This document shows, piece after piece, positions 3,427 through 64,000 of a stretch of 64,000 nucleotides of DNA. The first letter of the stretch is position 1; each line of letters opens with the position of its first letter. The stretch is taken from positions 1 through 64,000 of the IMG/VR virus record IMGVR_UViG_3300020477_000990. One strand, given 5' to 3'. The notes under the pieces are model-generated. The model saw only the letters and a program-made list of their open reading frames with translations, was not told the origin of the DNA and ran no database searches. The translations under genes were made by a program, and so were the position numbers.

Positions 3427-3873
3427 ATGACTATGCATTTAGAACGTGGCTTAACCACTCTGAATACAAAGAAGCGAAAGACTAAACCCAAGAAAATTGA
3501 GTATTATATGAAAGGGTTTAAAGAACAAAATAAGTTCTTAAAAAGTAAAGGTTTAGTACAAATGACCATGCAAGAATATATTGATTACAGACGTGGCAAG
3601 TTTAAGTCACCCGTTACTACAAATAGGAGTGTAGTGTCAACGGTTAGCACGTCGGTCTCCAAAACCGAAAGTGAGGGTTCGAATCCTTCCACTTCTGCCA
3701 AACCAGAACCTAAATTGAGTAACAAAATAGGCGGTGGTGCTACAAGAAATTGGCGTGAAGAAAAAGAAAGATTAGAAGTAAGTAGAAAATATTCAATTGT
3801 ACCTGCTTATAATAAAGGACCATATATGGTTGTATCAAAAGACGATTTAAAAACAGCAGGTAGAAAAGTATGA
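3427..3873 (+). CDS. Basic phage protein with C-terminal PAYNKGxY motif; contains tRNA-Trp internally
   Basis: Uninterrupted 148-codon ORF directly after a promoter; its stop overlaps the next ATG. Confidence 0.72.
   Translation: MTMHLERGLTTLNTKKRKTKPKKIEYYMKGFKEQNKFLKSKGLVQMTMQEYIDYRRGKFKSPVTTNRSVVSTVSTSVSKTESEGSNPSTSAKPEPKLSNKIGGGATRNWREEKERLEVSRKYSIVPAYNKGPYMVVSKDDLKTAGRKV
3625..3700 (+). tRNA. tRNA-Trp(CCA), nested in CDS 3427..3873
   Basis: AGGAGTG/CACTTCT acceptor, GTGT/GCAC D-stem, TCGGT-CTCCAAA-ACCGA, GAGGG-TTCGAAT-CCTTC, G73, encoded CCA. Confidence 0.93.
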
Positions 3874-23965: not shown

Positions 23966-24472
23966 ATGGAAGCAAACGATATAGTTAATAATCATTATGC
24001 AATTCACAAAAGCACTAGCCTTTTAGATGCTTTGCTTGAGTTTGAAAAAGCATTAGATGAAATGGGGTTATATACCTATAGAAATTGGGATCAAGGCGAA
24101 ATAGTTGAAGGTCCTAAAATTAGTAGATATTGGATAGAAACAACATTAATGTATCCACGCAATGAGATGCCAGATCCAACAGGTGGACAACGATTATTAG
24201 GCTATGACTGTAAAGTGTCTTATAAAAAAGACAATTACAAATCACCACGCAAAGTAGAATCATATGACGATTATCAACCAGGCACAAGAAAGCCAAAAGT
24301 TGATGACGTTCCAGTTTGGTTAGTTAATATAAAAATGCCTAAGAAATTTTTAGAAAACTTTAATTTAGAATTAGAAGCAGATCAAACAGATCAAACTGCG
24401 GCTGATCAAGAAGCCCAACAACAAGGGCAGGAGGAAGGGTTAAACGATGAAGCTTTACTCACTGATCAATAA
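23966..24472 (+). CDS. Phage hypothetical protein (late)
   Basis: NW..GE.VEGP...RYW...MPDPTGG. Confidence 0.75.
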   Translation: MEANDIVNNHYAIHKSTSLLDALLEFEKALDEMGLYTYRNWDQGEIVEGPKISRYWIETTLMYPRNEMPDPTGGQRLLGYDCKVSYKKDNYKSPRKVESYDDYQPGTRKPKVDDVPVWLVNIKMPKKFLENFNLELEADQTDQTAADQEAQQQGQEEGLNDEALLTDQ

Positions 24473-24872
24473 AGATAAGTTAGACGAAGGTCTAAGACCA
24501 AATGATTTACAACATTTGATTTTAGATAAAATTAGTCTTGATGAGTTTGAACCAAAAAGTGGTGATTCAAAAGATATATTAGTAATGGGCTTGTATTCAG
24601 TTGATGAAGAGCCTGCAAGAGATTTAAGTAGATTTATTGAACGAGGTTATATTGATGTAATTGATACAGAAGTATCACCTGGACCAGATGAAGATGGAAA
24701 CTATATGGTGTTTGTTGAAATCAATAAAAATAAAGACACAATGAAAAGAGTTTCAGAAATATTAAATGATATTAAGACTATTACATCTATTAATGAATGG
24801 CAATTACATTTTTATCGTGGCGGAGTACGTTCTTTAACTGAAGATATGATCAAACAAGCTATCAGAGGTTAA
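24447..24872 (+). CDS. Phage hypothetical protein
   Basis: ORF in late operon. Confidence 0.7.
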   Translation: MKLYSLINKDKLDEGLRPNDLQHLILDKISLDEFEPKSGDSKDILVMGLYSVDEEPARDLSRFIERGYIDVIDTEVSPGPDEDGNYMVFVEINKNKDTMKRVSEILNDIKTITSINEWQLHFYRGGVRSLTEDMIKQAIRG

Positions 24873-48700: not shown

Positions 48701-51270
48701 CAGAAGTTACAGATGCTTCAACTAATACTGTTAATACATCACACATTATTGGTATTAAGGCTAGAGCAGGAAACTTTAAAGCAGGAAGTACTGCCACTAA
48801 CGCATATGGTTTATATGTTGACACATCAAAAGATGGTGCGGCAACTATAACAAATAGATATTCAATTTACGCACCACAGTCAAGTGATAAGGCATACTTT
48901 GCAGGTCAAGTACAAATAGGTGCATTTACAATACCAAATACAGATGGTACTAATGGACAATTTTTAAAAACAGATGGTGCTGGAAACCTTACATGGACAT
49001 CAATAACACAAGAAAATTTAGCAGATAATGATACAGATGATTTAAGTGAAGGTTCTTCTAACTTATACTTTACTAATGCAAGAGCAGATGCACGTATTGG
49101 AGCATCAAGTTTAAGTGATATATCAAATGTACACACAGCGGCTCCAACAGATGGTCAAGTACTTAAATGGGATAACGGAAATAGTAGATGGGCACCAGCG
49201 GCAGACACAGATACAGTTTATACTTCATTTAACTCAGACTTTGATACAAGATTAGCGGCAAAAGATACAGGTGATTTAAGTGAAGGAAGTAATTTATATT
49301 ACACAGATGCAAGAGCTGATGCAAGAATTACAAACGCATTAATTGATGAAGACAATATGGCTTCAGATAGTGCTACAAAATTACCATCACAACAATCAGT
49401 TAAGGCATACGTTGATTCACAAGTAGCAAGTGAAAATGAATTAAGCGAAATGAATGATGTAACTTTATCAGGTTTAGCATCAAGTCAATTCTTACAATAC
49501 AATGGTACTGCTTGGGTGAATGTAAGTAGTTCAGCAGTTCCGGCAGGCTCAGATACAGAAGTTCAATTTAATGATGGTGGTGGTTTTGCTGGTGATTCAG
49601 ACTTTACATATAATAAAACAACAAATAAAATTACAGTTGGATCAGTTACAACAACAGGTGCTTCACCGTCTATTTCATCTTCAGGTGCTTTAGGAATTTC
49701 AACTACAGCATCAAACAGCGATATTACAATTACACCACATGGTACTGGTGACATTGTACTTGATAGTCAAAAATGGCCACAGGCAGATGGTCCAGCAGGT
49801 TCATATTTAAAAACAGATGGTGCTAGTCAGTTAAGTTGGGACTTGTTAGATACAGATGATGTAGGTGAAGGCGGAAGATTATATTATACAACTGCAAGAG
49901 TTGATCAAAGAATTACAGGACAATGGTTAGTTGATGAAGATAATATGGCATCAGATAGTGATACTAAAATTCCTTCTCAACAATCAGTTAAAGCATACGT
50001 AGACGCACAGATTTTAACAAAAGATAATACAGATGAAATTGCAGAAGGTTCAACTAATCTTTATTATACAGATGCAAGAGCACAGGCAGTTTCAATTAAT
50101 AATTTAGTAGAAGATACTACTCCACAGTTAGGCGGTACACTTGATGCCAACAGTAATACAATTGACATGGGTACAAATATTATTACTGATGCAAAAGTTG
50201 GTAATTGGGATACAGCACATGGTTGGGGTGACCACTCAAGTGCAGGTTACTTAACATCAATTAGTGCAAATTCAATTAATGATACACACATTGATTGGGG
50301 AACAGGTGCTAATCAAGTATCATCAGCTGATGTTCCAGAACAAACAAATTTATATTACACAGATGCAAGAGCTGATGCAAGAATTGGAGCGGCAAGTATT
50401 AATGCATTATCAGATGTTAATACATCAGGTGCGGCAAATGGCAAGATATTAAAACACAATGGTACTGATTGGGTAGTAGCAGATGACTCAGGTGGTCCTG
50501 CAGATACAGATGCATTATCAGAAGGTTCAAGTAACTTATACTTTACTAATGCAAGAGCAGATGCACGTATAGCCGCGGCAACGTTTACTACACTATCAGA
50601 CGTAGATGCTGTAGTAGCCGGTGATGATGGTAAGATATTATACTACGATCATTCATCAACTTCATTTAAATGGAAAGCAGATGCAGGTGGTCCAGCAGAT
50701 ACTGATGCATTGTCAGAAGGTTCAAGTAACTTATACTTTACAAACGCAAGAGCTGATGCACGTATTGGAGCGGCGGATATAGCTGACTTAAACAATGTAC
50801 ACACAGCGGCGGCAACAGATGGACAAGTACTTACTTGGGATAATGGAAATTCAAGATGGGCACCAGCTGATGCAGGTGGTGGTGGAACAACCACAGTAGA
50901 AAGATTTAAAATTAACTATGCAACAAATGGTAACTTACAAAGTATTACAGATATAACATCTGGAATATCAGGAGTAAACATTGATTCAGCGGCAGGTGGT
51001 GATATTACAATTACATTTACAGGATACAGTTATCCACCAGCAGGTATATTATACTTTGGTTACAAATATGCATCAAATGAATATGATATTATGCCTTGGA
51101 ACAAAGACGTTACATTAAGAAAAGTACCAGGCGGTGGATCATCAGGATCTCCAACAGCATTTGGATCAATATCAACAATTTCAATTAAAGCGGCTGAAGG
51201 TGATACTGGAGCTTCAAGATCATTTGGTACAGTTACTCATGCATGGATACAATTGGTAATGGGAGGCTAG
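45733..51270 (+). CDS. Large repeat-rich tail fibre / virion adhesin (1845 aa)
   Basis: APGALDTLNELAAALGDD fibre motif; ~11 NLY(F/Y)T.AR repeats; GQVL.W repeats. Confidence 0.85.
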   Translation: MADNTGSNLGTGHIVFSSKVGNDLQFKTLVGGTNITLANTASEITITASNDTTALNIGTGSGIFTSKAGDNIQFKSLIANAASGISLTSNADDLTFQLVSANVDAGKLGGVAASDFLQKSNNLSGLTNLATARSNLSVYSKAEVDGFAVKNNANVLPSADNTWSLGDNSNRWAAIYANRFYGMATTAGSMASLNDITDVDTSGAVNNSVLKWNSSTSQWEIGVDSGGGGGSSSFVGLSDTPGNFTGDANKYVRVNAGETALEFVDGVATEAYVTTQVNNLIDSAPGALDTLNELAAALGDDANFSTTITNSIATKLATADFNNTFDTRFGNKNISDLSNVHTAAPTDGQVLSWDNGNSRWAPSNVGSGDITRVNITAGTGLSGTQDTTSGDHTQTLAVDVGTSAGKIVQLDGSAKLPAVDGSALTNLPAAYTNASVDAHLNQSNPTSGFVLSWNGSDYAWVTNAGYTDTDFDNRLATKSTTNLTEGTNLYYTDARVNARVGALGSANWDTAFGWGDHSSAGYLSSVALNNLTDVNTAGVANGKILKYNGTSWVVADDTGGPADTDALGEGSTNLYFTNARADARISAATFTTLSDVDAVVAGDNGKILYYDHGTTSFKWKVDAGGPADTDALAEGSTNLYFTNARVDTHLNQSNPTSGYVLSWNGSDYVWVANGTPGAITDIVNDATPQLGGTLDANGNTIDMGTNVLTDVNLGQFITAHGWGDHSGAGYLTSTGVISSHTDVHNAAATDGQVLKWDNANSRWAPANDTDTVYSSFNSDFDTRLTAKDTGDLSEGSNLYFTNARADARIGAASINALSDVDTSGAANGKILKHNGTSWVVADDTDTDTGILNVVEDTTPQLGGNLDVQTNTIKSSDNVQLGEGVSATGITGTLATRVSGFGAYFGFTSDNSKRHYNNVWQSKQTLSTNVDTGNKKQGWLIDSVLELDGNTHGANDTADVSKLFGDYSYTSLKSSSGNTSANGVVGHSFSAEVTDASTNTVNTSHIIGIKARAGNFKAGSTATNAYGLYVDTSKDGAATITNRYSIYAPQSSDKAYFAGQVQIGAFTIPNTDGTNGQFLKTDGAGNLTWTSITQENLADNDTDDLSEGSSNLYFTNARADARIGASSLSDISNVHTAAPTDGQVLKWDNGNSRWAPAADTDTVYTSFNSDFDTRLAAKDTGDLSEGSNLYYTDARADARITNALIDEDNMASDSATKLPSQQSVKAYVDSQVASENELSEMNDVTLSGLASSQFLQYNGTAWVNVSSSAVPAGSDTEVQFNDGGGFAGDSDFTYNKTTNKITVGSVTTTGASPSISSSGALGISTTASNSDITITPHGTGDIVLDSQKWPQADGPAGSYLKTDGASQLSWDLLDTDDVGEGGRLYYTTARVDQRITGQWLVDEDNMASDSDTKIPSQQSVKAYVDAQILTKDNTDEIAEGSTNLYYTDARAQAVSINNLVEDTTPQLGGTLDANSNTIDMGTNIITDAKVGNWDTAHGWGDHSSAGYLTSISANSINDTHIDWGTGANQVSSADVPEQTNLYYTDARADARIGAASINALSDVNTSGAANGKILKHNGTDWVVADDSGGPADTDALSEGSSNLYFTNARADARIAAATFTTLSDVDAVVAGDDGKILYYDHSSTSFKWKADAGGPADTDALSEGSSNLYFTNARADARIGAADIADLNNVHTAAATDGQVLTWDNGNSRWAPADAGGGGTTTVERFKINYATNGNLQSITDITSGISGVNIDSAAGGDITITFTGYSYPPAGILYFGYKYASNEYDIMPWNKDVTLRKVPGGGSSGSPTAFGSISTISIKAAEGDTGASRSFGTVTHAWIQLVMGG
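47395..50751 (+). repeat. Intragenic direct repeats in the fibre gene (~270-bp copies at ~47395-47667 and ~50479-50751; ~100-bp copies at ~48030 and ~49200)
   Basis: Near-identical in both DNA and protein. Confidence 0.85.
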
Positions 51271-51273
51271 TAG

Positions 51274-53250
51274 ATGGCCTACAAAACTAATTATATTGAT
51301 GTTAATAAACCAGCAAAAGTTTTAAGTTTAAACATTACATCAATTGCAAACAAAACACAATGGCCACATAATGATGGACAAGGTGATAAATGGTGGTCGA
51401 GTGGTTCAAATCCAAAATATTATCAATGGACAGTTCAAGGAACAGTAACAGCACAGAATCATGGTTCTCACTTAACAAGAAAAGATTTTCAATATAATGG
51501 ATTAGATATACAAGTAGGTGATTGGATTGCAGGTGCATCAACAGGATTATGTTGTAGAATTGTTTCTATATCAGCAAAAGCAACAGGTAGTTTTACCTGT
51601 ATTGTAGAAGATTGGTTAAGATATAATACATTTAGATCATCTTCAGGTTCTGGTATATTTGCTACAGGTACAGCGGTTTGTTTTCAATTAAATGAAAACG
51701 GACACCCTATGATAGATCCAGTACCAGCATCTATTACTTCTGGAACGTTTTATCAAAATATTAACTCAAGATTTCAATATTTAAATCCACAAATGCACTA
51801 TGTATTAGATCAAACAGCACATGGTTTTGCGGCAGGAGATGTTATATCAATTACAGGTTCAGGCTTTGCTAAAACAACAGGTGCAACAGCAAGTAAAACA
51901 ATTGGTACAGTAACTAATCCAGGACCAGGCCCAAATCAATTTATGTTAAGACCAAATACAAGAATTATTGATTTCAATCCTGCTATACCAGGATCAGTAG
52001 GTGATTTTATTTACACAGACAATAGTACAGCAGGTGGTTTAACAACTACTTCAACATCAGGTAAGATACAGTTTTTAAAAATAGCAGATGCTATTGCTTC
52101 ATCAGTTACAGGATCACAAGTAGACCCAACAACTACAGCAAGTGATGTTTTAGAAATTAATGAAATAGCGGTTACATTTACTGGTGGTAATTTGACACAA
52201 ACAATAACAGACATTAATGGTGGTACAGGAACGCATGGGGTTTCAGCATCAAGTTCACCTTCACCAACTACAGCAACCACGGCAGTAGAAAGTTTAGCTT
52301 ATGGACTAGTTGGTGTTTATCCAAATGGACAAATTACTATTAATGGTACTAATGTAACATTTACAACTACAACGGCTGGACAAGCGGCATATGGTATTGC
52401 AGTTGGTATTGCAGATGATATTATTGCAGATGTTAACGCGGCATCTCCAACAAATATTACAGCAAGTAAGTCAGGATCAAATGTTATATTAACAGAATCA
52501 CAAGGTAATGCAATTACAATTGTAAATGTACAAAATGATGGACAAGGTAATCCAGTAGCAGGTCCAAGTTCAGGTACAGGATGGGAATTGTCAACAAGTG
52601 CATCATCAGGTGCTTATATAAAATTAACAAGATCAGATGGTGGAGAAATTTTATTAGATGAAACAACTGGAACACCATTAAACGATTTAGGATTATTTTC
52701 CGTACATAATGGAAGACCACCGTTAGCAGTAACAGTAGAACAAGGTATTGTTGCAGGTGGCGGCGGAACAACTGTTGTAAATGATATAGCGGCAAGAAAT
52801 GCTTTATCTCCTTCAGTTGGAGATATGGTCTATGTAATTGATTCAGGTAATAGTGAGTATGCTTTCTATGTTTATAGTGGCGGTACTTGGAAATTACTTG
52901 CAGATGAAGATTCAGCAAATACAGATGCTAATACACTTTCAGCAACTATAACACAGGCAGGCGGCTCAGGTACAACAGCAATTGGAACAGTATCAGATGG
53001 TTCAAGAATAACATTAATTAGTGTAGAAGTTACAGTAGCATTTGACGATGCACCAACATTAACAATTGGTGACGCAAGTGATAATGATAGACTTGTTACT
53101 AATAATGAAATAGATTTAGGATCTGTAGGAACCTATGCAATACAGCCTGCTTATCAATACTCTACAGGTTCAGATGCGACTATAAATGCGTATTTTAATG
53201 TTGCAAGTGCAACAACAGGATCGGCTAAAATACTAGTTAGTTATATGTAA
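51274..53250 (+). CDS. Probable virion structural protein
   Basis: T/G/S-rich, beta-rich; follows the fibre gene. Confidence 0.75.
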   Translation: MAYKTNYIDVNKPAKVLSLNITSIANKTQWPHNDGQGDKWWSSGSNPKYYQWTVQGTVTAQNHGSHLTRKDFQYNGLDIQVGDWIAGASTGLCCRIVSISAKATGSFTCIVEDWLRYNTFRSSSGSGIFATGTAVCFQLNENGHPMIDPVPASITSGTFYQNINSRFQYLNPQMHYVLDQTAHGFAAGDVISITGSGFAKTTGATASKTIGTVTNPGPGPNQFMLRPNTRIIDFNPAIPGSVGDFIYTDNSTAGGLTTTSTSGKIQFLKIADAIASSVTGSQVDPTTTASDVLEINEIAVTFTGGNLTQTITDINGGTGTHGVSASSSPSPTTATTAVESLAYGLVGVYPNGQITINGTNVTFTTTTAGQAAYGIAVGIADDIIADVNAASPTNITASKSGSNVILTESQGNAITIVNVQNDGQGNPVAGPSSGTGWELSTSASSGAYIKLTRSDGGEILLDETTGTPLNDLGLFSVHNGRPPLAVTVEQGIVAGGGGTTVVNDIAARNALSPSVGDMVYVIDSGNSEYAFYVYSGGTWKLLADEDSANTDANTLSATITQAGGSGTTAIGTVSDGSRITLISVEVTVAFDDAPTLTIGDASDNDRLVTNNEIDLGSVGTYAIQPAYQYSTGSDATINAYFNVASATTGSAKILVSYM

Positions 53251-53258
53251 TTTTAACC

Positions 53259-53291
53259 AATTCCAGATAAATATGTGTATAGAATGGAGTT
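53259..53291 (+). promoter_or_regulatory. Late promoter inside an SD-sequestering hairpin
   Basis: AATTCCA/TGGAGTT stem; GATAAATA (53266-53273) in loop. Confidence 0.5.
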
Positions 53292-53294
53292 ATA

Positions 53295-53597
53295 ATGAGT
53301 AGACCAAAACCAGATATTTTATTAGAATTTACGAATCCAAAGAACTATAAGAGTGAACAGGTTCTTAAGGCCGAGGCAATCTATGCGGTTTTCTTTAAAG
53401 ATGCTCCAATCAATTTACGTTCATTAAATACTTTAGTGAACTACCCCGGACCTAAGTACAAAAAAGTCTCCTTTTCAAATTCAGGACACGCAATTAACCT
53501 TGCGGAAAAATTAAATTCATTATTCAAATGTGATGATTTTTCAGTCCACGTTTTAACAGCAGGAAAGAAACTTAATGTACAAGGACAACCAAAGTAA
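53295..53597 (+). CDS. Phage hypothetical protein (MSRPKP...)
   Basis: PGPKYKKVSFSNSGHA. Confidence 0.75.
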   Translation: MSRPKPDILLEFTNPKNYKSEQVLKAEAIYAVFFKDAPINLRSLNTLVNYPGPKYKKVSFSNSGHAINLAEKLNSLFKCDDFSVHVLTAGKKLNVQGQPK

Positions 53598-53964
53598 AAA
53601 AATCATTTTAGATTATTTAAAAAGTAAGAATGTGTCAGATGCACAGATGTTTACTATGTTTGTGAGTCGTATTGGCAAAGATTCTTTTGAGCAATCATTA
53701 AGATTAACAAAAATGGGTGTACAGGTATTAGAAGAACACTTTCCTTCTTATGTAATTAAAATTAAACAGCCTTTTACAGTTAAAGCAATTCATATACATA
53801 ATTTAGAACGTGAAATGCTATTACCTTATTATATAGATAATAAAAAAATTGTAGTTTTTAATGAAAAAGATGCAGTAGATCTAAAGTTAATTGACGGTGA
53901 TGTTGAGCTTTGGTCCAGAAATTTCAGCATAAACAACCAAGATTATTCTCCTAAATTTGACTAA
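53575..53964 (+). CDS. Hypothetical protein
   Basis: SLRLT..G; PYYI. Confidence 0.7.
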   Translation: MYKDNQSKKIILDYLKSKNVSDAQMFTMFVSRIGKDSFEQSLRLTKMGVQVLEEHFPSYVIKIKQPFTVKAIHIHNLEREMLLPYYIDNKKIVVFNEKDAVDLKLIDGDVELWSRNFSINNQDYSPKFD

Positions 53965-53971
53965 AAGAGGA

Positions 53972-54052
53972 TAAGTCATTGAAATCATTGGCTTTTTTCT
54001 GGCCATTTTTCTGACAAATAATGGTTGACAGATTTCTATATGATGCTATTAT
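53972..54052 (+). promoter_or_regulatory. Duplicated promoter cassette, copy 1 (IHF-like site + sigma70 promoter)
   Basis: TAAGTCATTGAAATCATTGGCTTTTTTCTG...ATAATGGTTGACAGATTTCTATATGATGCTAT. Confidence 0.8.
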
Positions 54053-54086
54053 ATAATTATAAACAAAAAAGCAGAAAGAGGCTAAA

Positions 54087-55178
54087 ATGGTGAAAACAAA
54101 TACAACAGAAACTAGAACAGTTAGACCAAGCGATGTTAAAGCAGAAGTTCTAGCCTGTATAGATGCAAAGAGACCTGTAATGTTATGGGGTCCTCCAGGC
54201 ATTGGAAAATCAGAAATTATTAATGAAATAGGACAAGACTTAAATCGTAATGTTATTGATTTAAGATTGTTATTATTGGAACCAACAGATTTACGTGGTA
54301 TTCCATATTTTAATTCGAAAGCGAATAAAATGGATTGGGCACCACCAGTAGATCTTCCAAGTGATCCTAAAGATAATTCAATATTATTTTTAGACGAAAT
54401 AAATGCCGCACCACAATCAGTACAGGCCGCGGCGTATCAATTAGTTCTTAATAGAAGAATTGGTACTTATAAATTACCAGATGGAGTATCAATTGTAGCG
54501 GCTGGTAATAGAGAAAGTGATAGAGGTGTTACTTATAGAATGCCTTCACCACTTGCTAACAGAATGTTACATATTGAGATGGCTGTTAATTTTGAAGATT
54601 GGCAGGATTGGGCAACCAAAAATGAAATCCATGCTGATGTAGTTGGATATTTAACATTTGCTAAAAATGATTTATATGACTTTGATCCTAGAAGTTCATC
54701 TAGAGCATTTGCAACACCAAGAAGTTGGTCGTTTGTAAGTGATATGCTAGAAACTGGAAAACTTGAAGGTTCAAGATTAACTGATATTATCACAGGGTCA
54801 GTTGGTGAAGGTCTTGCAGTAAAATTTATAGCACATAGAGATGTTGCTGGTAAATTACCTAACCCATCTGATATTTTAAGTGGTAAAGTTAAAAAACTTG
54901 ATACTAAAGAAGTTAGTGCTATGTATTCATTAATTACTTCATTATGTTATGAATTAAAAGATGAATGTGAAAAGGCTCAAAAATCTAAAAAGATGGCTGG
55001 GTGGCATAAAATGGCAGATAACTTTTTGCAGTATATGATGGATAATTTTGAAACTGAAATGGTAGTGCTAGGGGCAAGAATTGCTCTTAAAAATCATCAA
55101 CTACCGTTTAGTCCTAAAGAGCTAAAGAGCTTTAAGGACTTTTATAAGAGATATGGTAAGTTAATCGTTGACGTTTAA
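54087..55178 (+). CDS. MoxR-like AAA+ ATPase
   Basis: GPPGIGKS, LFLDEIN, AAGNR, PLANR, TPRSW. Confidence 0.9.
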   Translation: MVKTNTTETRTVRPSDVKAEVLACIDAKRPVMLWGPPGIGKSEIINEIGQDLNRNVIDLRLLLLEPTDLRGIPYFNSKANKMDWAPPVDLPSDPKDNSILFLDEINAAPQSVQAAAYQLVLNRRIGTYKLPDGVSIVAAGNRESDRGVTYRMPSPLANRMLHIEMAVNFEDWQDWATKNEIHADVVGYLTFAKNDLYDFDPRSSSRAFATPRSWSFVSDMLETGKLEGSRLTDIITGSVGEGLAVKFIAHRDVAGKLPNPSDILSGKVKKLDTKEVSAMYSLITSLCYELKDECEKAQKSKKMAGWHKMADNFLQYMMDNFETEMVVLGARIALKNHQLPFSPKELKSFKDFYKRYGKLIVDV

Positions 55179-55191
55179 TTTATCATTATAT

Positions 55192-55241
55192 GGGGACTAG
55201 GTCTACCTCTCTCTGCTCTTTCGGAAGACCGGTCCCCGCCA
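55192..55241 (+). ncRNA. tRNA-like minihelix RNA (7+5 bp, GCCA end, pyrimidine-rich loop)
   Basis: GGGGACT-A-GGTCT pairs with AGACC-GGTCCCC, followed by GCCA. Confidence 0.5.
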
Positions 55242-55255
55242 AATTATGATAAGTA

Positions 55256-55651
55256 TTGTATATGGACAAAGTGCTAATATTAATAAAATTAATTTCGTTA
55301 TTATATCCTAAGAAAAATTGGGATAAGAATTCTCATTTTATTTTTACACATCAAGATAGAAAATTAATGAAAGAGTATTTAAAGTCAGCAAAGAAAATGG
55401 GACTTCATAAAATATTAAGAGAAGTGAATTTAATAGATCATGATTTTTTATCTTATGAAAAAGGTGAAGTATATCATTTATATATTGGTCCTAAATATAT
55501 TTGGGATCATGATTATAAAATGCTTTGGAAACCCCATGAAGATAAAGGCATTTGGAAAATAGAAAAAATATTTAATGAAAAAATTTCTCATGTACCTAAA
55601 GTAATGGGACAAAAAATATTAGGTAATTATTCATCGAAAGGTAAGGAATGA
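55256..55651 (+). CDS. Hypothetical protein
   Basis: ORF. Confidence 0.55.
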   Translation: MYMDKVLILIKLISLLYPKKNWDKNSHFIFTHQDRKLMKEYLKSAKKMGLHKILREVNLIDHDFLSYEKGEVYHLYIGPKYIWDHDYKMLWKPHEDKGIWKIEKIFNEKISHVPKVMGQKILGNYSSKGKE

Positions 55652-55836
55652 AAATAACATTTTTAGATAAAAAATATGCAACAATGAGATATGAAAAACT
55701 TTTATCTAATTGTGATAAAGCATTATTAGAAGCAGAAGATCAATGGGCTATTACTTATTGGACTAATGTAAAAGAAAAATTAAGAAAAAATATGTCTAAA
55801 TTAGGTTTATTAAAAGGAAGTAAAATAGTTAACTAA
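55648..55836 (+). CDS. Hypothetical protein
   Basis: ATGA overlap. Confidence 0.6.
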   Translation: MKITFLDKKYATMRYEKLLSNCDKALLEAEDQWAITYWTNVKEKLRKNMSKLGLLKGSKIVN

Positions 55837-56109
55837 ATGGAACAACAATTTAATAACAAAGTATATCCAATTTATAAAAACGATATAGGTGTAAAAGAAA
55901 TACAGATAGGAGTAAAAAGTTTTATGTGTATGGGATGTTCACCACCAGATGATCACCCACACGTCTTTTTAACTATGGGAAATGATGAGTCATTAAATTG
56001 TATCTATTGCAATACAAAATATGTATATGATCATACACTAACATTTAGATATACTAATCCACCTGAGTGCTATGCAGGTGATAATATAATAGGTGAAAAA
56101 AATGAGTAA
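55837..56109 (+). CDS. zf-CHCC zinc-finger protein (alphaproteobacterial type)
   Basis: FMCMG.SPP.DHPHVFL.MG...CIYC. Confidence 0.82.
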   Translation: MEQQFNNKVYPIYKNDIGVKEIQIGVKSFMCMGCSPPDDHPHVFLTMGNDESLNCIYCNTKYVYDHTLTFRYTNPPECYAGDNIIGEKNE

Positions 56110-56401
56110 AGAAGAACTTTCAGTTTTGAAAAATCATAAGAGAAAGTTTTTAGGAATGCCAGCGGTTTGTGAAAATTATTTTGGTAAAAAGTATAAACAC
56201 AATGTTCATTTTCCTACAAAGAATGTAGCTGAAAATATAGGTAACTGGCTTGAAACAGGACCACAGGGTAAATGGGGTTGGTATTATGAAGCCCATAAAA
56301 CTGATATGGAAATGATGTATGATGAACCAGTTAGAAAAGAACACGTGGTATTATCATTTGAAAATGGAGAAGATGCTTTAATATGCCAAATGAAAAAGTA
56401 G
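56093..56401 (+). CDS. Hypothetical protein
   Basis: ORF. Confidence 0.6.
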   Translation: MKKMSKEELSVLKNHKRKFLGMPAVCENYFGKKYKHNVHFPTKNVAENIGNWLETGPQGKWGWYYEAHKTDMEMMYDEPVRKEHVVLSFENGEDALICQMKK

Positions 56402-56763
56402 AAATAGAAGAATATAAAGTTAAAAAAAATAAATCTACTTATCGTAAAAAGAGTAATGAAGAATTAAAACAATTGGCTATTGAATGTTATCGAGGATCAG
56501 TATTTACAAGTTACCAAATACATCAGCAAGATATGAATATGTTGCAATCAATTTTTATGCCATTAGCATTTATGAACCCAGCACAATTAAAAGATACATA
56601 TAAAGATAAGCCTCATATGTATTATTCACACGAGAAAGATGCATTTCCAACTGGAATAAATGGATATGGCTGTTATGGATCTGTAGCATATCTTAATAAA
56701 GAAGATGGAGATCGTTTTAGAAAATACTATAATGCAATAGAAGAAAAACTAGAAAAATTATAA
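56383..56763 (+). CDS. Hypothetical protein
   Basis: ORF; PTGINGY. Confidence 0.65.
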   Translation: MPNEKVEIEEYKVKKNKSTYRKKSNEELKQLAIECYRGSVFTSYQIHQQDMNMLQSIFMPLAFMNPAQLKDTYKDKPHMYYSHEKDAFPTGINGYGCYGSVAYLNKEDGDRFRKYYNAIEEKLEKL

Positions 56764-57002
56764 TGCAAATATCATCACACGAATTTATGGAATTAGATCA
56801 AGATTATTATGTGATAGATATACATACAGTTTTTGAATCAAAAGAAGATAAATTAATAGAAGATGTATTAAAAAAACACACAACAGGTTGGTATTATAAA
56901 GCAGGATCATTTTTTGCATTTGAAAAAGCAAAAGATAGAGATATTGTAAAAGGTGCATTGGCTTGGGATAAGTTAACAAAGAGTTTTAAAAAAGATGAGT
57001 AA
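56763..57002 (+). CDS. Hypothetical protein
   Basis: TAATG coupling. Confidence 0.6.
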   Translation: MQISSHEFMELDQDYYVIDIHTVFESKEDKLIEDVLKKHTTGWYYKAGSFFAFEKAKDRDIVKGALAWDKLTKSFKKDE

Positions 57003-57177
57003 TGTATATTACAAGGTTACAGTCACTAAAAACGATATGGAATGTACTTTATATTGGTGGGAAAAAACATATAAAAAGTTAATGGAATCAGTTGACTTAT
57101 TGTATAAATGTGCTAAAGTAGATGCAGTAGAATTAGAAATGGTTACAAAGGAAGAATATGATGAAAATTTTGTATAA
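56995..57177 (+). CDS. Hypothetical protein
   Basis: Overlapping start. Confidence 0.55.
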   Translation: MSNVYYKVTVTKNDMECTLYWWEKTYKKLMESVDLLYKCAKVDAVELEMVTKEEYDENFV

Positions 57178-57186
57178 GGAAATATT

Positions 57187-57507
57187 ATGACAGTAAAAAA
57201 GACAATAAAAGATGTGGTAGAAGAACAGGTCACACTCGCCATACAAGATAAGAAAAAACTAATTAAAAAGGTAACACCATTACATGATAGGTCATGGTAT
57301 GTTAAATGGGTATCCTCTTTTATTATAATAATAGCAATGGCACTTACAGCTCTAGATTGGCATCCGTACAATTTGTTTTTTCATTTAGTTGGTGTAACAG
57401 GATGGGGAATTGTTGGATATCTATGGCACGATAGAGCATTAATGTTATTAAATGGAATAGCCGTTGGTATATTTACGGCCGGAATTATCGGATTTTATAC
57501 AGGGTAA
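57187..57507 (+). CDS. Small membrane protein (DUF6552-like)
   Basis: SWYVKW...PYN...GW..VG.LWHDRAL..LN. Confidence 0.7.
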   Translation: MTVKKTIKDVVEEQVTLAIQDKKKLIKKVTPLHDRSWYVKWVSSFIIIIAMALTALDWHPYNLFFHLVGVTGWGIVGYLWHDRALMLLNGIAVGIFTAGIIGFYTG

Positions 57508-57574
57508 GTCATTGAAATCATTGGCTTTTTTCTGATCAGATAATGGTTGACAGAATTCTATATGATGCTATACT
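57505..57574 (+). promoter_or_regulatory. Duplicated promoter cassette, copy 2
   Basis: 30-bp block identical to 53972-54001; 32-bp block with 1 mismatch to 54018-54049. Confidence 0.8.
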
Positions 57575-57604
57575 ATATATATAATTAGAAAAAGGAAGAG
57601 CTAG

Positions 57605-58855
57605 ATGACTTTTAAAACAACAACAAAATCAAAGATTAATAAGAAGCCAAAAATAGTGGCACAAACAGATGATGAAATTCGTGAAAGAATTGTACAAAGT
57701 AGAGTAAGACTTCTTTTAAAACATCCATTCTTTGGTAATCTAGCAACAAGATTGAAACTTAAAAACGCAGATGATTTTTGTCCTACCGCGGCAACTGATG
57801 GTAGACATTTTTATTATAATAGAGAATTTATTACTCCGTTAACACCTGAAGAATTAGACTTTCTTGTAGGCCATGAAGTGATGCATTGTGTTTATGATCA
57901 TATGGAAAGAAGAGAAGGAAGAAATCCTCAAATTTGGAATATGGCAACGGACTATGTGATAAATGGTCAGCTTGTTCGTGAAGGTCTTGGTAAAATGCCA
58001 AAACAAGGATTGCACGATTCAAAATATTATGATAAAAATTCAGATGAAGTATATCAAGATTTAGAGAAAAATGCAGTAGAAATTAAAGTTACTTTAGATA
58101 TGCATATGGATGGTGAAGGTCAACAAGGTAAAGGTGATCAACAAAATCCTGGAGACAAAGATGGTGAAGGTAAAGAAAAAATGCCAGTTATGTCTAAAGA
58201 AGAAAAAGAAAAATTAAAAGACGAAGTTAAAAATGCAGTATTACAAGCGGCACAGGCGGCAGGTGCTGGTAATGTTCCAAAAGGTGTTGAAAGACTTATT
58301 AAAAATATTACAGAACCTAAAATGGATTGGCGTTCGTTATTAGATCAGCATATTACATCAGTTGTAAAATCAGACTATTCATTTATGAGACCTTCAAGAA
58401 AAGGTTGGTCAGTAGATGCAGTATTACCTGGATTACAACCAGAACCAGCAGTAGATGTATGTGTTGCAATTGATACTTCAGGTTCTATTAGTGATAAGCA
58501 GTTGCAAACATTTTTAGCTGAAGTAAAAGGTATTATGGATTCATTCCAAGATTATAAAATACATATATGGAGTTTTGATACAGATGTTCATAATCCAGAA
58601 GTGTTTACACCAGATAAAGATATTACAGATTATAAGCCTGGTGGCTTTGGTGGTACAGAATTTACTGCCAATTGGGAATGGATGAAAGAAGAAGGTATAC
58701 AGCCTAAAAAATTAATTGTATTTACAGATGGTTATCCTTGGGGTTCATGGGGTGATGAAAACTATTGTGATACACTTTGGGTAATTCATTCTAATCACGA
58801 TAAAGATTTAGAAGCACCTTTTGGTGTAACTTGTCATTATGATGAGGTTGCTTAA
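57605..58855 (+). CDS. Metallopeptidase-like (HExxH) + VWA protein, DUF2201-type MoxR partner
   Basis: TAATDG, HEVMH, IDTSGS MIDAS, GGT.F, FTDG. Confidence 0.88.
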   Translation: MTFKTTTKSKINKKPKIVAQTDDEIRERIVQSRVRLLLKHPFFGNLATRLKLKNADDFCPTAATDGRHFYYNREFITPLTPEELDFLVGHEVMHCVYDHMERREGRNPQIWNMATDYVINGQLVREGLGKMPKQGLHDSKYYDKNSDEVYQDLEKNAVEIKVTLDMHMDGEGQQGKGDQQNPGDKDGEGKEKMPVMSKEEKEKLKDEVKNAVLQAAQAAGAGNVPKGVERLIKNITEPKMDWRSLLDQHITSVVKSDYSFMRPSRKGWSVDAVLPGLQPEPAVDVCVAIDTSGSISDKQLQTFLAEVKGIMDSFQDYKIHIWSFDTDVHNPEVFTPDKDITDYKPGGFGGTEFTANWEWMKEEGIQPKKLIVFTDGYPWGSWGDENYCDTLWVIHSNHDKDLEAPFGVTCHYDEVA

Positions 58856-58953
58856 TGCTTTGGTTTTTATTATTTCTTTTACTATCAATTTATGCATTTG
58901 GATTTAAAAATGTTTTAAGGGTTAGTTTACTAACCTTTGCTATGCTATTTGTA

Positions 58954-59178
58954 TTAGTTGTTTTTCTTGGAGTTATGGCATAACCTATCATCTAGGTGCT
59001 CACTAATTTTTTTAACTAGTTTAGAACTAGTATTTTCAAATATAAAAGGAAAGAAGGCATGAATAAATGTCATCATGCATAAAAGTAAAAATTTTATGCT
59101 ATATGATAATGAATGTATCATATGAGTGAAGTATGATTCACCGACACTATTAGGATGTTTCATAAATAGGTTTTTCAT
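58954..59178 (-). CDS. Small protein (DUF6356-like)
   Basis: F.KHPNSVGESYF.H...IHAFFPF.F...SS. Confidence 0.7.
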   Translation of the reverse strand: MKNLFMKHPNSVGESYFTHMIHSLSYSIKFLLLCMMTFIHAFFPFIFENTSSKLVKKISEHLDDRLCHNSKKNN

Positions 59179-59182
59179 TTTA

Positions 59183-59707
59183 CTACTCTATATTAGAATA
59201 GTCTACTGTAGAAGTATAATCGCGACACATTTGAGATTTTTCAAGTAGACCTTTAACAACATTAGCTATCATGGCAGGGTTTTCTTTGCCTTGTGCTAAC
59301 ACTAAACCTATAGACTGTTGAGTCTGGACCTGGTTACGTCTCATTTGTTCTATTAATCCTGGTAAAGGAAAATTGTAATCTTTTATTAATTTTTTAATAA
59401 CCATTTGAGATTTACTTTCAAACATTTGCCTTTGTGCTTTAATATTTGCAAGTAGTTCTTGCATACGTTGTAAATATTCTGTTGGGTAGCCTAAATTTGA
59501 ACCTACACCATAATTAACAGCCACTAACATCATTAAGTTATCATGGATTGCTCCACAGACAGTATATTCTCTAAAGTCACTTGCTATTGCTTGATATGTT
59601 GCATCGTTTGTATAGTCATGATTTTCATCTGGGTAAGTAACTGCTTGAACTGATGTTGTTAAACAGAATAGTATTACAAAAATAAAACCGACAATGCTCT
59701 TTCTCAT
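59183..59707 (-). CDS. Secreted hypothetical protein
   Basis: Signal peptide ending VQA; 174 aa. Confidence 0.7.
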   Translation of the reverse strand: MRKSIVGFIFVILFCLTTSVQAVTYPDENHDYTNDATYQAIASDFREYTVCGAIHDNLMMLVAVNYGVGSNLGYPTEYLQRMQELLANIKAQRQMFESKSQMVIKKLIKDYNFPLPGLIEQMRRNQVQTQQSIGLVLAQGKENPAMIANVVKGLLEKSQMCRDYTSTVDYSNIE

Positions 59708-59785
59708 AATAATATTTAACTATATATTTTTCTATAATAACATACTGGTTAACTTGTAGTTTAGTTTAAGATAAATATTTTTGAA

Positions 59786-60322
59786 ATGAGTTCCACCTTA
59801 ATATTAAATTCAACTGGTTCCCCTTTAAGTTTACTTCCTATTAGTGCGGTTAATTGGCATTTATCAATTAAATTACTTGTTTTAGATAAGTTTAAGGTAT
59901 TAGATGAATATGAAGATTGGATTATCCACAGCCCATCAATGGAAATGAAAGTTCCAGCGGTAATGATAGCAAAAAGATATTTAAATTTAACAAGATATCC
60001 AAAGTTTTCGCGGGGTAATGTATATCTAAGAGATTTATTCACTTGTCAGTATTGTGGTTGTGAGCATGGCTGGAATGATTTAACATTAGATCATGTACTT
60101 CCAAGAGCAAAAGGAGGCAGGTCAGCTTGGGAAAACATTGTGACTGCCTGTCATGATTGTAATGTATCAAAAGGTGATGATAAGTTATCTCCAATGAAAG
60201 ATCCATATAAGCCACATTATTGGGAATTGGCCAATAAAAGAGCCAGGTATCCTGTTAAAGTTGGCCATCATAGTTGGGTAAAATATCTAAAATGGAATGA
60301 AAATCTTATTAATGTTGCATAA
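59786..60322 (+). CDS. HNH endonuclease
   Basis: RD.FTCQYCG, LTLDHVLPRAKGG..WENIVTAC..CN. Confidence 0.9.
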   Translation: MSSTLILNSTGSPLSLLPISAVNWHLSIKLLVLDKFKVLDEYEDWIIHSPSMEMKVPAVMIAKRYLNLTRYPKFSRGNVYLRDLFTCQYCGCEHGWNDLTLDHVLPRAKGGRSAWENIVTACHDCNVSKGDDKLSPMKDPYKPHYWELANKRARYPVKVGHHSWVKYLKWNENLINVA

Positions 60323-60330
60323 AATAAAGG

Positions 60331-60360
60331 TTGACAATAAATATTAAAGTATACTATAAT
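60331..60360 (+). promoter_or_regulatory. Sigma70-type promoter
   Basis: TTGACA-N18-TATAAT. Confidence 0.65.
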
Positions 60361-60382
60361 AGAACAATAAGGAGTAAAAAAT

Positions 60383-60718
60383 ATGGCCGATACTCAAGAA
60401 GTAAAAAAACAAGAAGCAGTAGCACCTAGCCCAGATCAGGCAGTTGCTCCTCAATTAACAATTGCAGACTTAACACAATTGTTGAATATAATTGATGCCG
60501 CTTCTTCAAGAGGAGCCTTCAGAGCCAATGAACTTACTAACGTTGGTAGTGTAGTTGATAAACTTTCTAAGTTTTTACAATACGTTACAGACCAACAAAA
60601 AGCAGAAGCTGAAGCGAAAGCTAAAGCAGAAGGCGGATCAGTTGACGCAGGAACCGTAAGTGGTACTGATGCATCAGCTGGAAGTGGTTCAGGTGAATCT
60701 GAAGCTTCGAAAAAATAA
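60383..60718 (+). CDS. Phage hypothetical protein
   Basis: AAGGAG RBS; IID.ASSRGAFRANEL. Confidence 0.8.
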   Translation: MADTQEVKKQEAVAPSPDQAVAPQLTIADLTQLLNIIDAASSRGAFRANELTNVGSVVDKLSKFLQYVTDQQKAEAEAKAKAEGGSVDAGTVSGTDASAGSGSGESEASKK

Positions 60719-60750
60719 ATGAATAATAATTGCAATTAAGGAGAAACATC

Positions 60751-61377
60751 ATGACTGACATGATTAAACATACAGGTAGGATAGACTCAACTAACAGACG
60801 TGTTATTGTTGTATTTCCACAAATTCCTGAAGATCAAGAAAATTGTCTTGTAGTTGATGTTGATTCATTACCAGAGAAATATCACGATGGTTTAATGAAA
60901 ATAGTTGAATCAGCAGAATCGCAAGAATCAAATCAGTTGTATGAAGTATTAGGAAGAAATTTATTTTGGGATGGTAAAAATTGTTTGTCAACTTTGCACG
61001 AACAAGGTTTTTTAAGACGTGTTCCTGTTAATACAGTTACATTATTACCAAGACCAGATCAGTCTCTTCCATTAAAAGACTTTAATGCATACCAAAGTAT
61101 GGTAGCTGAAACAAAAACAACACCAGCAGAACCTACTGATGCTCAAACTACACGAGCTGGGGATATTACAAATCCAGCAGATGAAACTGACAGCGAAGGT
61201 ATAGCAAGAAATCTTTTAGTGCAGGCAGAATTACTTGAAAATGAAGCACGTCAAAAACGTGCAGAAGCAGAACAAGTGTCACCTGGTATACAGGTTAAAT
61301 TAGGTAAAGTTACTACCGTTGTTACAAAACGTGGTAGAGGAAGACCTAAAAAAGCCGAAGCTACAACGACTGCGTAA
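60751..61377 (+). CDS. Phage hypothetical protein with C-terminal AT-hook-like RGRGRPKK
   Basis: AAGGAG RBS; basic tail. Confidence 0.75.
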   Translation: MTDMIKHTGRIDSTNRRVIVVFPQIPEDQENCLVVDVDSLPEKYHDGLMKIVESAESQESNQLYEVLGRNLFWDGKNCLSTLHEQGFLRRVPVNTVTLLPRPDQSLPLKDFNAYQSMVAETKTTPAEPTDAQTTRAGDITNPADETDSEGIARNLLVQAELLENEARQKRAEAEQVSPGIQVKLGKVTTVVTKRGRGRPKKAEATTTA

Positions 61378-61393
61378 TTAATAATTATTAATT

Positions 61394-61439
61394 AATCTGC
61401 CTATGTTTTATGATAAATATTACGTAGGCAGATTTTTTT
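61394..61439 (+). terminator. Terminator-like hairpin containing a late promoter
   Basis: AATCTGCCTATGT/ACGTAGGCAGATT plus T-run; GATAAATA (61412-61419) in loop. Confidence 0.7.
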
Positions 61440-61790
61440 ATGACAGAAGAGCAAAATTCAAATAGAAAATTTTTACCATCTAAAGAATCGGGAGATCACG
61501 ATCATGCGGAATTTAATAAAATAATGCATGAAATTGCTCCAAAAGAAATTCCAGCTAAATTTGTTGATATGATTAAAATTATCCGTAAAGATGGAACTGT
61601 TACTAATATGACAAGAGATGATATTGTTAATACTGTTCCTCTTGCAGGTCCAGTTGATTGGGAAAGCATAGCTGGTAATTATCATGATATCCGCGATATG
61701 GAAATTTATATAGATATGGATGCCTTAGAATATACAGTTCATAAAAATGTTCATCGAATGCTTGGTAAATTCTTTAAAAAAAGCAATTAA
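61440..61790 (+). CDS. Hypothetical protein
   Basis: ORF. Confidence 0.7.
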   Translation: MTEEQNSNRKFLPSKESGDHDHAEFNKIMHEIAPKEIPAKFVDMIKIIRKDGTVTNMTRDDIVNTVPLAGPVDWESIAGNYHDIRDMEIYIDMDALEYTVHKNVHRMLGKFFKKSN

Positions 61791-61821
61791 TTGACAATCT
61801 TATTAAAATATGTTATAAATA
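61791..61821 (+). promoter_or_regulatory. Overlapping early and late promoter
   Basis: TTGACA-N17-TATAAA; the -10 also reads TATAAATA. Confidence 0.7.
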
Positions 61822-61866
61822 CTAATACAAATTACCGTATTAAACAATAGGGGTTGGGGTAATATT

Positions 61867-62418
61867 ATGATAAAAACTATTTTAGCATTTCTTTATATTT
61901 CAGGCATTCTTGCCTTGGGAAGATTAATTCCACATCCACCAAACTTAACACCAATATTAGCCGCGGCTATTTTCGCTCCATACATTATTAATGATCGTTG
62001 GACAGCAATTGCAATTCCTTTAATGGCGATGTTTATTGCAGATTTAGTTATAGGGTTTCATCCATATATGTTATGGGTCTATGGTGCAATAGGTTTATCA
62101 ACTTTAATTAGTAAATGGTCAATGCAATTTAATAAAAAGTATATTCAATTAGGAGCAATGACAATAGTATCTTCTGTATTATTTTTTATAATAACAAATT
62201 TTGCAGTATGGACTATGTGGGATTACTATCCAAAAACATTAGATGGTTTAATAATGTGTTATACAATGGCAATACCATTTTTTCAAAATACATTATTAGG
62301 AACTATAATATATACAGCTCTAATGGCATCTTTAACTGTAGCATTAACTCGACCTTTTGAAAATACCTATGTACTGGTAATAAGCAAAGGAAGAGATTAT
62401 GTTAACAAACATTTTTAA
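61867..62418 (+). CDS. BtuM-like (DUF6580) ECF S-component membrane transporter
   Basis: RLIPHPPNLTPI, SSVLFFIITNFAVW, YP.T..GL..CY..AIPFF.N; ~6 TM. Confidence 0.78.
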   Translation: MIKTILAFLYISGILALGRLIPHPPNLTPILAAAIFAPYIINDRWTAIAIPLMAMFIADLVIGFHPYMLWVYGAIGLSTLISKWSMQFNKKYIQLGAMTIVSSVLFFIITNFAVWTMWDYYPKTLDGLIMCYTMAIPFFQNTLLGTIIYTALMASLTVALTRPFENTYVLVISKGRDYVNKHF

Positions 62419-64000
62419 GTTAATAATAATATTTTTTATTTTTTTAGGAACAGCAAAAGCAAACGAATGCTATTGGGAAGAAATGAAAGACGAAACAATC
62501 GTTTGTGATTCGTTAGTTATTAATATACCAATATTTTTTACACAAACACCTTCACATAGAAGTAATGAAATACATAATAACGAATACATATTTCCAGACA
62601 ACGAAAGTATTCTAACAGATGCATTAAATGATGTAGCAAATTTTAATGCAGTACGTTCTGGATCAAAAGGACAACAAACATCGTTGTTTACTAGAGGAAC
62701 AAATTCAAATCATACATTAGTAACAATAAACGGATCAGCAATTACAGATCACTCAACAACTAATGGAGCAACAGATCTTAACAATGTAAATATAAATTTT
62801 GCAGATGGTATACATTTGTATACAGGTCCTATGAGTACTATATATGGACCTAATGCAATAGGTGGTGTAGTTGATATTAAAACAAGTGATGTTAAAGAAA
62901 ATGAAGTAGTAGTTACTTATGGATCTAACAATACCAAACAAACACATATTACAATTAGTGAAGGACTTACAAACTTTGGAATAAATTTTGAAGAATCAGA
63001 TGGTATATCAGTTTATCCAAAAGGTGATGAAAAAGATGGATACAACATACTTGGATTTAACTTTGGGCATTTAACAAAAATTGATAATACAGAAATTAAA
63101 ATAACAGGAATAACAAATAATACAGAATCAGATTTAGATGCCTCGGGTGCAGATGATTTAGACTATACAGCAGATACTAAATTCCATTTTGGACAAATAC
63201 AAACGTCTACAGAATTTGATGATGGAATTCTTAAATCAGTTTTAGATGCTACCTATTGGGATAGAGAATATGTAAATGGAACTGAACTTGATGAATATGA
63301 TTCTTCAGCTATACATTCAGCAACTGATTGGATAACACACACAGACAAAGTATCAACTAAAACTGGAATAGATACTGTTTGGTATAGTGCAGAATTTAAC
63401 AACAGAGGATCTTATAATTCTTCTGTAGATAAAGAAGCAAATACAACTGGAATATATCATAACTTTGATTATGTAACTGATTTAGATATAGTAGTGTCAG
63501 GTGGTTTACGTTATGATTATAATTCAATAGTAGAAGGGCAATCAACATACAGGGTTGGTACAGCATACAAAGGACTTTACTTTAGTAGGTCAACAGGGTA
63601 TAGAGCACCAACACTATATGAATTATATGGTGCAGACAATTACGGGTATAGTGGTAATGAAAATTTAAAAGCAGAAACTTCTGTAACAAATGAAGTAGGA
63701 TATAAATTTGGTAACCAAACGGTAAATGGTAATATTAGTGTTTACTCTACAAAAATAGAAGATATGATTACATACGGAAATTCTACTTATAGTAATGACA
63801 GTAATGGTACGTCAACAATGAAAGGTGGAGATATAAAACTTAACTACTACAAAGGAAATTATGGTTTTCATAATAGTATAGCATTTACGTCAGCACAAGA
63901 CTCAACTGATAATTGGTTAAAAAGAAGACCACATACGATTATCAATTCATCAGTTAGTTATTATAAAGATGATTTTTATATTTCTCCAAGTATAAATTAT
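62399..64000 (+). CDS. btuB: TonB-dependent receptor, BtuB-like (partial, runs off window; not in ORF track)
   Basis: Hand translation open for 534 codons: signal peptide, SGSKGQQTSLFTRGTNSNHTLV, GPMSTIYGPNAIGGVV, TGYRAPTLYELYG..GNENLKAE. Confidence 0.85.
   Translation, partial: MLTNIFKLIIIFFIFLGTAKANECYWEEMKDETIVCDSLVINIPIFFTQTPSHRSNEIHNNEYIFPDNESILTDALNDVANFNAVRSGSKGQQTSLFTRGTNSNHTLVTINGSAITDHSTTNGATDLNNVNINFADGIHLYTGPMSTIYGPNAIGGVVDIKTSDVKENEVVVTYGSNNTKQTHITISEGLTNFGINFEESDGISVYPKGDEKDGYNILGFNFGHLTKIDNTEIKITGITNNTESDLDASGADDLDYTADTKFHFGQIQTSTEFDDGILKSVLDATYWDREYVNGTELDEYDSSAIHSATDWITHTDKVSTKTGIDTVWYSAEFNNRGSYNSSVDKEANTTGIYHNFDYVTDLDIVVSGGLRYDYNSIVEGQSTYRVGTAYKGLYFSRSTGYRAPTLYELYGADNYGYSGNENLKAETSVTNEVGYKFGNQTVNGNISVYSTKIEDMITYGNSTYSNDSNGTSTMKGGDIKLNYYKGNYGFHNSIAFTSAQDSTDNWLKRRPHTIINSSVSYYKDDFYISPSINY

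Follow-up and report, generated by a model that had tools for sequence, protein, structure and literature searches.

A hairpin in the 3'UTR of a phage MoxR-like ATPase gene with a loop complementary to ribosome-binding sites

The analysed window is a 64,000-nt AT-rich stretch (about 31% GC; positions 1 to 64,000 of the IMG/VR record IMGVR_UViG_3300020477_000990) of a 328-kb contig of an uncultured phage. The features of the ATPase and VWA genes described below lie on the plus strand. A near-consensus sigma-70-type promoter at 54025-54052 (-35 TTGACA, 16-nt spacer, extended -10 TGcTATTAT; 11/12 match with TG), which is conserved in relatives, precedes a predicted short 5'UTR (54059-54086, with the start site inferred from the position of the -10 element) and a gene for a 363-aa MoxR-like AAA+ ATPase (54087-55178; Pfam AAA, AAA_3 and AAA_5; PHROG 1297 ATPase, E = 6e-103). 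The leader contains a purine-rich Shine-Dalgarno (SD) tract, AGCAGAAAGAGG (54070-54081), 5 nt upstream of the ATG at 54087, with a low opening energy of 2.5 kcal/mol. A second, near-identical copy of the promoter cassette (57547-57574) drives the gene for a 416-aa VWA partner protein (57605-58855). The two copies share an identical motif of 23 specified bases that is found nowhere else in the window, and the duplication extends about 55 nt upstream of the -35 hexamer (53968-54052 and 57503-57574; shared upstream sequence GGrTAAGTCATTGAAATCATTGGCTTTTTTCTG), well beyond what a promoter needs. This extension could hold an UP element, an operator or a weak terminator, although only a 5-bp terminator-like stem was flagged, at 53989-54005. 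The VWA protein matches PHROG 1314, which is labelled 'HNH endonuclease', but Pfam finds a DUF2201_N putative metallopeptidase domain plus a VWA-like DUF2201 domain and no HNH, so that the PHROG label looks wrong. The window also carries three tRNA genes, Ala-TGC (1-76, cut by the window edge), Gly-GCC (1346-1420) and Trp-CCA (3625-3700).

Thirteen bases after the ATPase stop codon, the sequence forms a hairpin (55192-55237) that consists of GGGGACT (55192-55198), a bulged A (55199), GGTCT (55200-55204), a 21-nt loop (55205-55225) with two weak inner pairs, AGACC (55226-55230) and GGTCCCC (55231-55237), followed by GCCA (55238-55241) and no U run. The fold is stable, with a minimum free energy (MFE) of -26.6 kcal/mol and z = -3.2, and 0 of 200 shuffled sequences fold as well. 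The loop segment CCTCTCTCTGCT (55206-55217) is 11/12 complementary to the ATPase SD tract, with an internal A-C mismatch, and the loop segment GCTCTTTC (55215-55222) pairs 8/8, with one G-U, with GGAAGAGC (57594-57601), 3 nt upstream of the VWA ATG at 57605. The 14-nt loop core, CCTCTCTCTGCTCT (55206-55219), has a mean unpaired probability of 0.85, whereas the variable 3' part of the loop (55220-55225, TTCGGA here), together with GCTCT, forms the segment that pairs with the VWA ribosome-binding site (RBS). The first-pass annotation, which described this hairpin, its tail and both complementarities, was accurate to the base. In the window and in one relative (L204; L numbers denote related loci), an additional outer helix (TTATCAT/ATGATAA; 55179-55190 and 55245-55254) extends the hairpin, but this helix is absent from the other relatives. 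Searches with the stem sequences found no second copy of the hairpin in the window.

The complementarities exceed the chance expectation within the window. The best non-self match to the 15-nt loop core on either strand of the 64 kb is the ATPase RBS, with 2 mismatches. When the unpaired loop was scored against 97 plus-strand translation initiation regions, the ATPase ranked 2nd (-17.3 kcal/mol) and VWA 3rd (-14.7), against a mean of -7.2 and a standard deviation of 3.3. The first place (-17.9) belongs to the leader (24417-24452) of an unrelated virion structural protein gene (24447-24872; PHROG 13138), which lies beyond the reach of the related loci. A scan with the whole 60-nt 3'UTR placed VWA only 16th of 93, a result that reflected stem bases that are not available for pairing. 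Of 93 genes, the ATPase gene has the most stable pairing between its own initiation region and its own 3'UTR, and genes in general show no such trend (self -9.1, cross -8.7). After subtraction of the opening costs, the net energies are about -10.7 kcal/mol for the ATPase site and about -10.3 for VWA (duplex -12.2). The targets are purine-rich SD regions, which are biased towards matching any CU-rich loop, and the background distribution controls for this bias only imperfectly.

A search of the region 53900-55700 against 50,697 deposited phage genomes, in near and distant modes, detected no DNA similarity. An exact search for the 15-nt loop core in viral contigs gave at least 119 hits, but all except the known relatives are unrelated, lack the flanking GGGG/CCCC stem and, by our reading, are largely antisense to coding sequence, so that they are uninformative. 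A scan of a genome collection gave one hit, in a freshwater Bacteroidetes MAG, which provides no host clue for this clade. In contrast, protein-guided searches yielded 160 related loci. In all relatives with 72-100% identical ATPase (31 distinct hairpin sequences), a hairpin is found in the same place. The stem changes through compensatory substitutions in five pairs, for example, GGTCT/AGACC to GATCT/AGATC, and through whole-arm replacements, such as GGGAAACTTGCTC or GGAGAACTTGTTC, with matching partners, whereas the 14 bases of the loop core are invariant. Because a MAFFT/RNAalifold alignment of the hairpins mis-registers the bulge and recovers only 9 pairs, we relied on folds of individual sequences. 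The ATPase RBS varies (GCAGAAAGAGG, AAAGAGAGAGG, ACAGAGAGAGA, AAGGAGAGAGG), but every relative that carries the hairpin retains a complementary purine tract, with 9-12 pairs to the loop. Because the loop core never varies, the loop-RBS pairing shows only one-sided change within this clade, and the two-sided covariation comes from the comparison of clades and from the other types described below.

The tRNA-like reading fails in the relatives at 72-100% identity. The tail is GCCA in only 2 of the 31 distinct sequences, with GCCC in 14, ACCC in 12 and other sequences in 3; the helix is 13-15 bp, with a bulge that moves or disappears; and the loop is 18-24 nt, with no T-loop. ARAGORN calls only the three true tRNAs in the window, and Rfam (4227 families, tRNA, tmRNA and C4 included) gives only weak chance hits, with no C4 match at the gathering threshold over the window and no tRNA, tmRNA or C4 match in 55000-55450 even at E up to 10. 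What is conserved is a purine followed by CC directly after the stem, in 28 of the 31 distinct relatives, across clades whose flanks otherwise differ, and none of the explanations considered here accounts for this. The hairpin does not have the features of an intrinsic terminator either: the tail is GCCAAAUUAUG, a terminator scan of 50000-64000 lists no site at the hairpin, and in the clade with 73% identical ATPase, a separate canonical terminator lies downstream of it. In the 90% clade, no terminator follows the hairpin, so that the 3' end of the putative regulatory RNA is undefined. A conserved GATAAGTA motif lies between the hairpin and the start codon of the next gene (55246-55264 in the window, and the same position in L001-L003 and L201-L237), although the downstream genes differ between relatives, and a similar GGATAAGT/GGGTAAGT precedes both promoter cassettes. 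In one subclade (L225 4236-4250; the same position in L226 and L228), a GAGAGAGA tract that is complementary to the loop lies about 15-20 nt downstream of the hairpin and could form a local pseudoknot that competes with the distant targets.

The decisive comparative result comes from more distant clades, with 57-63% identity, in which the 3'UTR shares no sequence similarity with this hairpin and yet carries the reverse complement of that locus's own SD/start region, immediately after the stop codon or, often, in the apical loop of a long hairpin or terminator. At least seven covarying types exist: AGGAGCGCAA/TTGCGCTCCT, AGGAGCAA/TTGCTCCT, GGAGACTCTCAC/GTGAGAGTCT, GGAACACAGCCC/GGGCTGTGTTC, GGAGTCAT/ATGACTCC, AGGAGTTAAC/GTTGACTCC and the CU-loop type of the window. 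Over 96 distinct loci, the leader of a locus pairs with its own 3'UTR 3.3 kcal/mol better than with those of others (means of -16.3 and -12.9 kcal/mol, respectively), and with 11 clusters at 80% identity as units, only 3 of 20000 permutations were as low as the observed value. Within the GGAGACTCTC type, 12 distinct combinations keep 9-12 contiguous pairs through matched changes next to the start codon (CAC/GUG, CAU/AUG, CAA/UUG and CAUA/UAUG). The MFE folds of the complete mRNAs (1.15-1.23 kb) pair the SD with the 3'UTR in 7 of 7 loci with a linear anti-SD, whereas among 8 relatives without one, 5 had no initiation-region base paired to the 3'UTR; in the CU-loop type, an 11-bp helix between the loop and a distant site would be a pseudoknot, which the folding tools cannot evaluate. 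Several clades have only a plain terminator, as does the closest cultured relative, Pseudomonas phage PA5oct (53% identity), which has no anti-SD, so that the element is not essential to the gene family. An origin of the complementarity as DNA-level inverted repeats flanking a mobile cassette was rejected because several pairings rely on G-U pairs that would be mismatches in DNA, and the repeats coincide exactly with the SD/start region.

The complementarity to the VWA leader is conserved as well. In every locus of the CU-loop type, the duplicated promoter cassette drives either VWA directly (90% clade) or a small membrane ORF to which VWA is probably translationally coupled (73% clade). This 34-codon hydrophobic ORF (starting MLELMKRIV; L227 3796-3897, L230 6382-6486 and L231 3613-3717) follows the duplicated promoter and overlaps the VWA start (TAATGATG). 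All 16 distinct leader sites of the VWA operon pair with the loop at -14.4 kcal/mol or lower (mean -15.6), compared with 3.5% of 283 other initiation regions from the same loci. The pairing registers differ and follow the variable 3' part of the loop, with UUUCG against GGAAGAGC in the subclade of the window, UGUUC against GAACAG or AACAGAG in another, and GGAGAGAGA, ACAGAGAGA or AGGAGAGCAGA against the invariant core elsewhere, whereas a third promoter type in the same loci has non-complementary sites. The ATPase and VWA leaders descend from one duplicated cassette, so their similarity is partly inherited. In the 73% clade, a terminator separates the two transcription units, so that the predicted interaction with the VWA leader must be between molecules. 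The distance between the ATPase stop and the VWA start ranges from 68 nt to about 4.2 kb among the relatives, and the clade of the window has acquired a variable set of small ORFs between the two partner genes (55242-57546).

Taken together, these observations are best explained, with moderate confidence, by a regulatory element in the 3'UTR of the ATPase mRNA, in which a stable stem holds a pyrimidine-rich anti-SD sequence open in the loop. The 5' half of the loop (CCUCUCUCUGC) would pair with the RBS of the same gene, about 1.1 kb upstream, either within one mRNA or between copies, whereas the 3' half (CUGCUCU plus a variable extension) would pair with the RBS that leads the separately transcribed VWA operon, so that this half of the element probably acts in trans. 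Two overlapping targets would explain why the whole loop core is frozen. Both genes are driven by copies of one strong sigma-70-type promoter, and pairing most probably occludes the SD sequences; if so, once ATPase transcripts are complete and accumulate, translation of the ATPase and of its VWA partner would be throttled together. The structure, its conservation, the complementarities and their covariation across the family are demonstrated by the present analysis, whereas the occurrence of the pairing in vivo, repression rather than stabilisation as its outcome, the choice between cis and trans action, the mode of 3'-end formation and the existence of a processed small RNA are inferences from sequence alone.

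The first-pass annotation had interpreted the hairpin as a CCA-ended tRNA-like minihelix, a 3'UTR-derived sRNA of about 50 nt that shuts off both co-promoted partners in a self-contained feedback circuit, by analogy with the P1 C4 and P4 CI antisense RNAs matured by RNase P, while allowing that the short, purine-rich matches could be due to chance. This interpretation is only partly supported: the anti-RBS reading, aimed at both the ATPase and the VWA gene with their shared promoter cassette, is strongly supported and extends more widely than proposed, whereas the tRNA-like minihelix and, by extension, maturation by RNase P are not supported.

Among the alternatives, the main one concerns the sign of the effect. 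The pairing might be real but positive, whereby closing of the mRNA ends, or tethering of the ATPase and VWA mRNAs, protects them from ribonucleases or couples their expression, resembling the hbs 5'/3'-UTR interaction in B. subtilis (PMC5737220) or the hly-prsA2 mRNA pairing in Listeria (PMC8722363). The comparative evidence is the same for both signs, and the two proteins are partners, which usually need balanced expression. However, the paired segment covers the SD itself and, in several types, the start codon, and SD pairing of this kind blocks initiation in icaR (PMC3868564) and in a systematic B. subtilis screen (PMC12697547), so that a positive role appears unlikely. The minihelix excised by RNase P and acting purely in trans is similarly doubtful. 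It draws on the 7 + 5 bp geometry followed by GCCA in the window, on the conserved purine-CC, which is compatible with, but no evidence for, recognition by RNase P (the ribozyme contacts the RCC of its substrates), and on the support for an anti-RBS loop with a trans target. However, besides the lack of conservation of the CCA, stem length and bulge, and the absence of a T-loop and of model matches, other clades place the anti-SD in linear 3'UTRs or terminator loops with no such geometry, and a cis-acting 3'UTR on the full-length mRNA explains the ATPase half equally well. It is also unlikely that the hairpin is merely structural, that is, a barrier to 3' exonucleases, a processing site or a weak terminator that stabilises the ATPase mRNA, with the complementarity a by-product of a CU-rich loop meeting purine-rich SD sequences. 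The GC-rich stem directly after a stop codon, the purine-rich targets and the unrelated gene at 24447 that scores as well as the ATPase fit this view, but a stabiliser does not need an invariant 14-nt loop while its stem drifts, the terminator scan of 50000-64000 lists no site at the hairpin, in the 73% clade a separate true terminator follows it, and this view explains neither why unrelated 3'UTRs in other clades match their own RBSs nor why the VWA leaders keep the complementarity in different registers. Least likely, the loop could be an operator for a phage or host RNA-binding protein, such as a translational repressor or the ATPase/VWA complex itself, with the GA-rich leaders bound independently, as the strict invariance of 14 loop bases across about 27% protein divergence is typical of protein or multi-partner recognition, but other clades replace the loop sequence completely while it always stays complementary to the local RBS, as base pairing but not a shared protein predicts, and two overlapping RNA targets already explain the invariance.

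The closest precedent is the icaR mRNA of Staphylococcus aureus, in which a pyrimidine-rich anti-SD motif in the 3'UTR is complementary to the SD of the same gene across the whole coding region, and the pairing blocks initiation and creates an RNase III site (PMC3868564). The phage element shows this arrangement of an anti-SD in the 3'UTR, and conservation and covariation indicate selection for the pairing. It has no sequence relationship to icaR, its 3'UTR is very short, the anti-SD is held in the loop of a 13-15 bp hairpin, the pairing is longer (9-12 bp against UCCCCUG), the support comes from covariation over many clades rather than from experiment, and there is probably a second target on another transcript. 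More generally, anti-SD-like sequences hundreds of nucleotides downstream pair with the RBS, repress expression and are normally depleted from genes (PMC12697547). The 3'UTR-derived trans-acting sRNAs of enterobacteria, such as CpxQ, SroC and DapZ, likewise have a conserved seed at the 3' end of an mRNA that pairs with RBSs of other transcripts and remains invariant while its flanks drift; in the phage element, the conserved seed and complementary targets on another transcript are present, but there is no evidence of a discrete processed RNA and no terminator with a U tail in the clade of the window, the seed sits in a large hairpin loop rather than in a single-stranded 5' part, and one target is the parent mRNA itself. 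The P1 C4 and P4 CI RNAs are phage-encoded and expose loop bases that pair with RBSs, and a purine-CC follows the stem in most relatives of the element described here; however, this element does not match the Rfam C4 model, its CCA is not conserved, its helix length is variable, and it lies in the 3'UTR of a protein gene rather than in an immunity operon leader. In lambda int retroregulation, a phage gene is also controlled from a structured site downstream of its coding region, but sib works as an RNase III hairpin that triggers 3'-to-5' decay and does not pair with the RBS.

Thus, the principle of 3'UTR anti-SD control is already known, whereas its presence in phages, the display of the seed on a hairpin loop, the probable second target and the unusually rich natural covariation appear to be new; a literature search for phage 3'UTR anti-SD regulation found nothing relevant. 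Very few natural long-range 5'UTR-3'UTR interactions are documented in bacterial mRNAs, with only three cited in a 2025 survey (PMC12697547), and none that we found comes from phages or rests on phylogenetic covariation. A more far-reaching scenario, which we consider possible but tentative, is that a family of aquatic phages has evolved a self-contained RNA circuit, in which the loop-displayed seed closes its own mRNA and, as an mRNA-mRNA or processed-sRNA regulator, also silences the separately transcribed VWA partner operon, so that the output of a two-protein machine is set from two identical strong promoters. This would be the first 5'UTR-3'UTR and mRNA-mRNA regulatory interaction in phages supported by family-wide covariation, and the conserved RCC tail might mark a tRNA-independent RNase P or CCA-enzyme processing site. 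One gene family here offers many independent sequence solutions to the same pairing, which makes it a ready comparative data set for learning the rules of distal anti-SD control and, in the hairpin plus leader, a compact part amenable to testing in reporters. These findings also suggest that the phage MoxR/VWA pairs, whose function is unknown, need tightly limited and co-ordinated expression.
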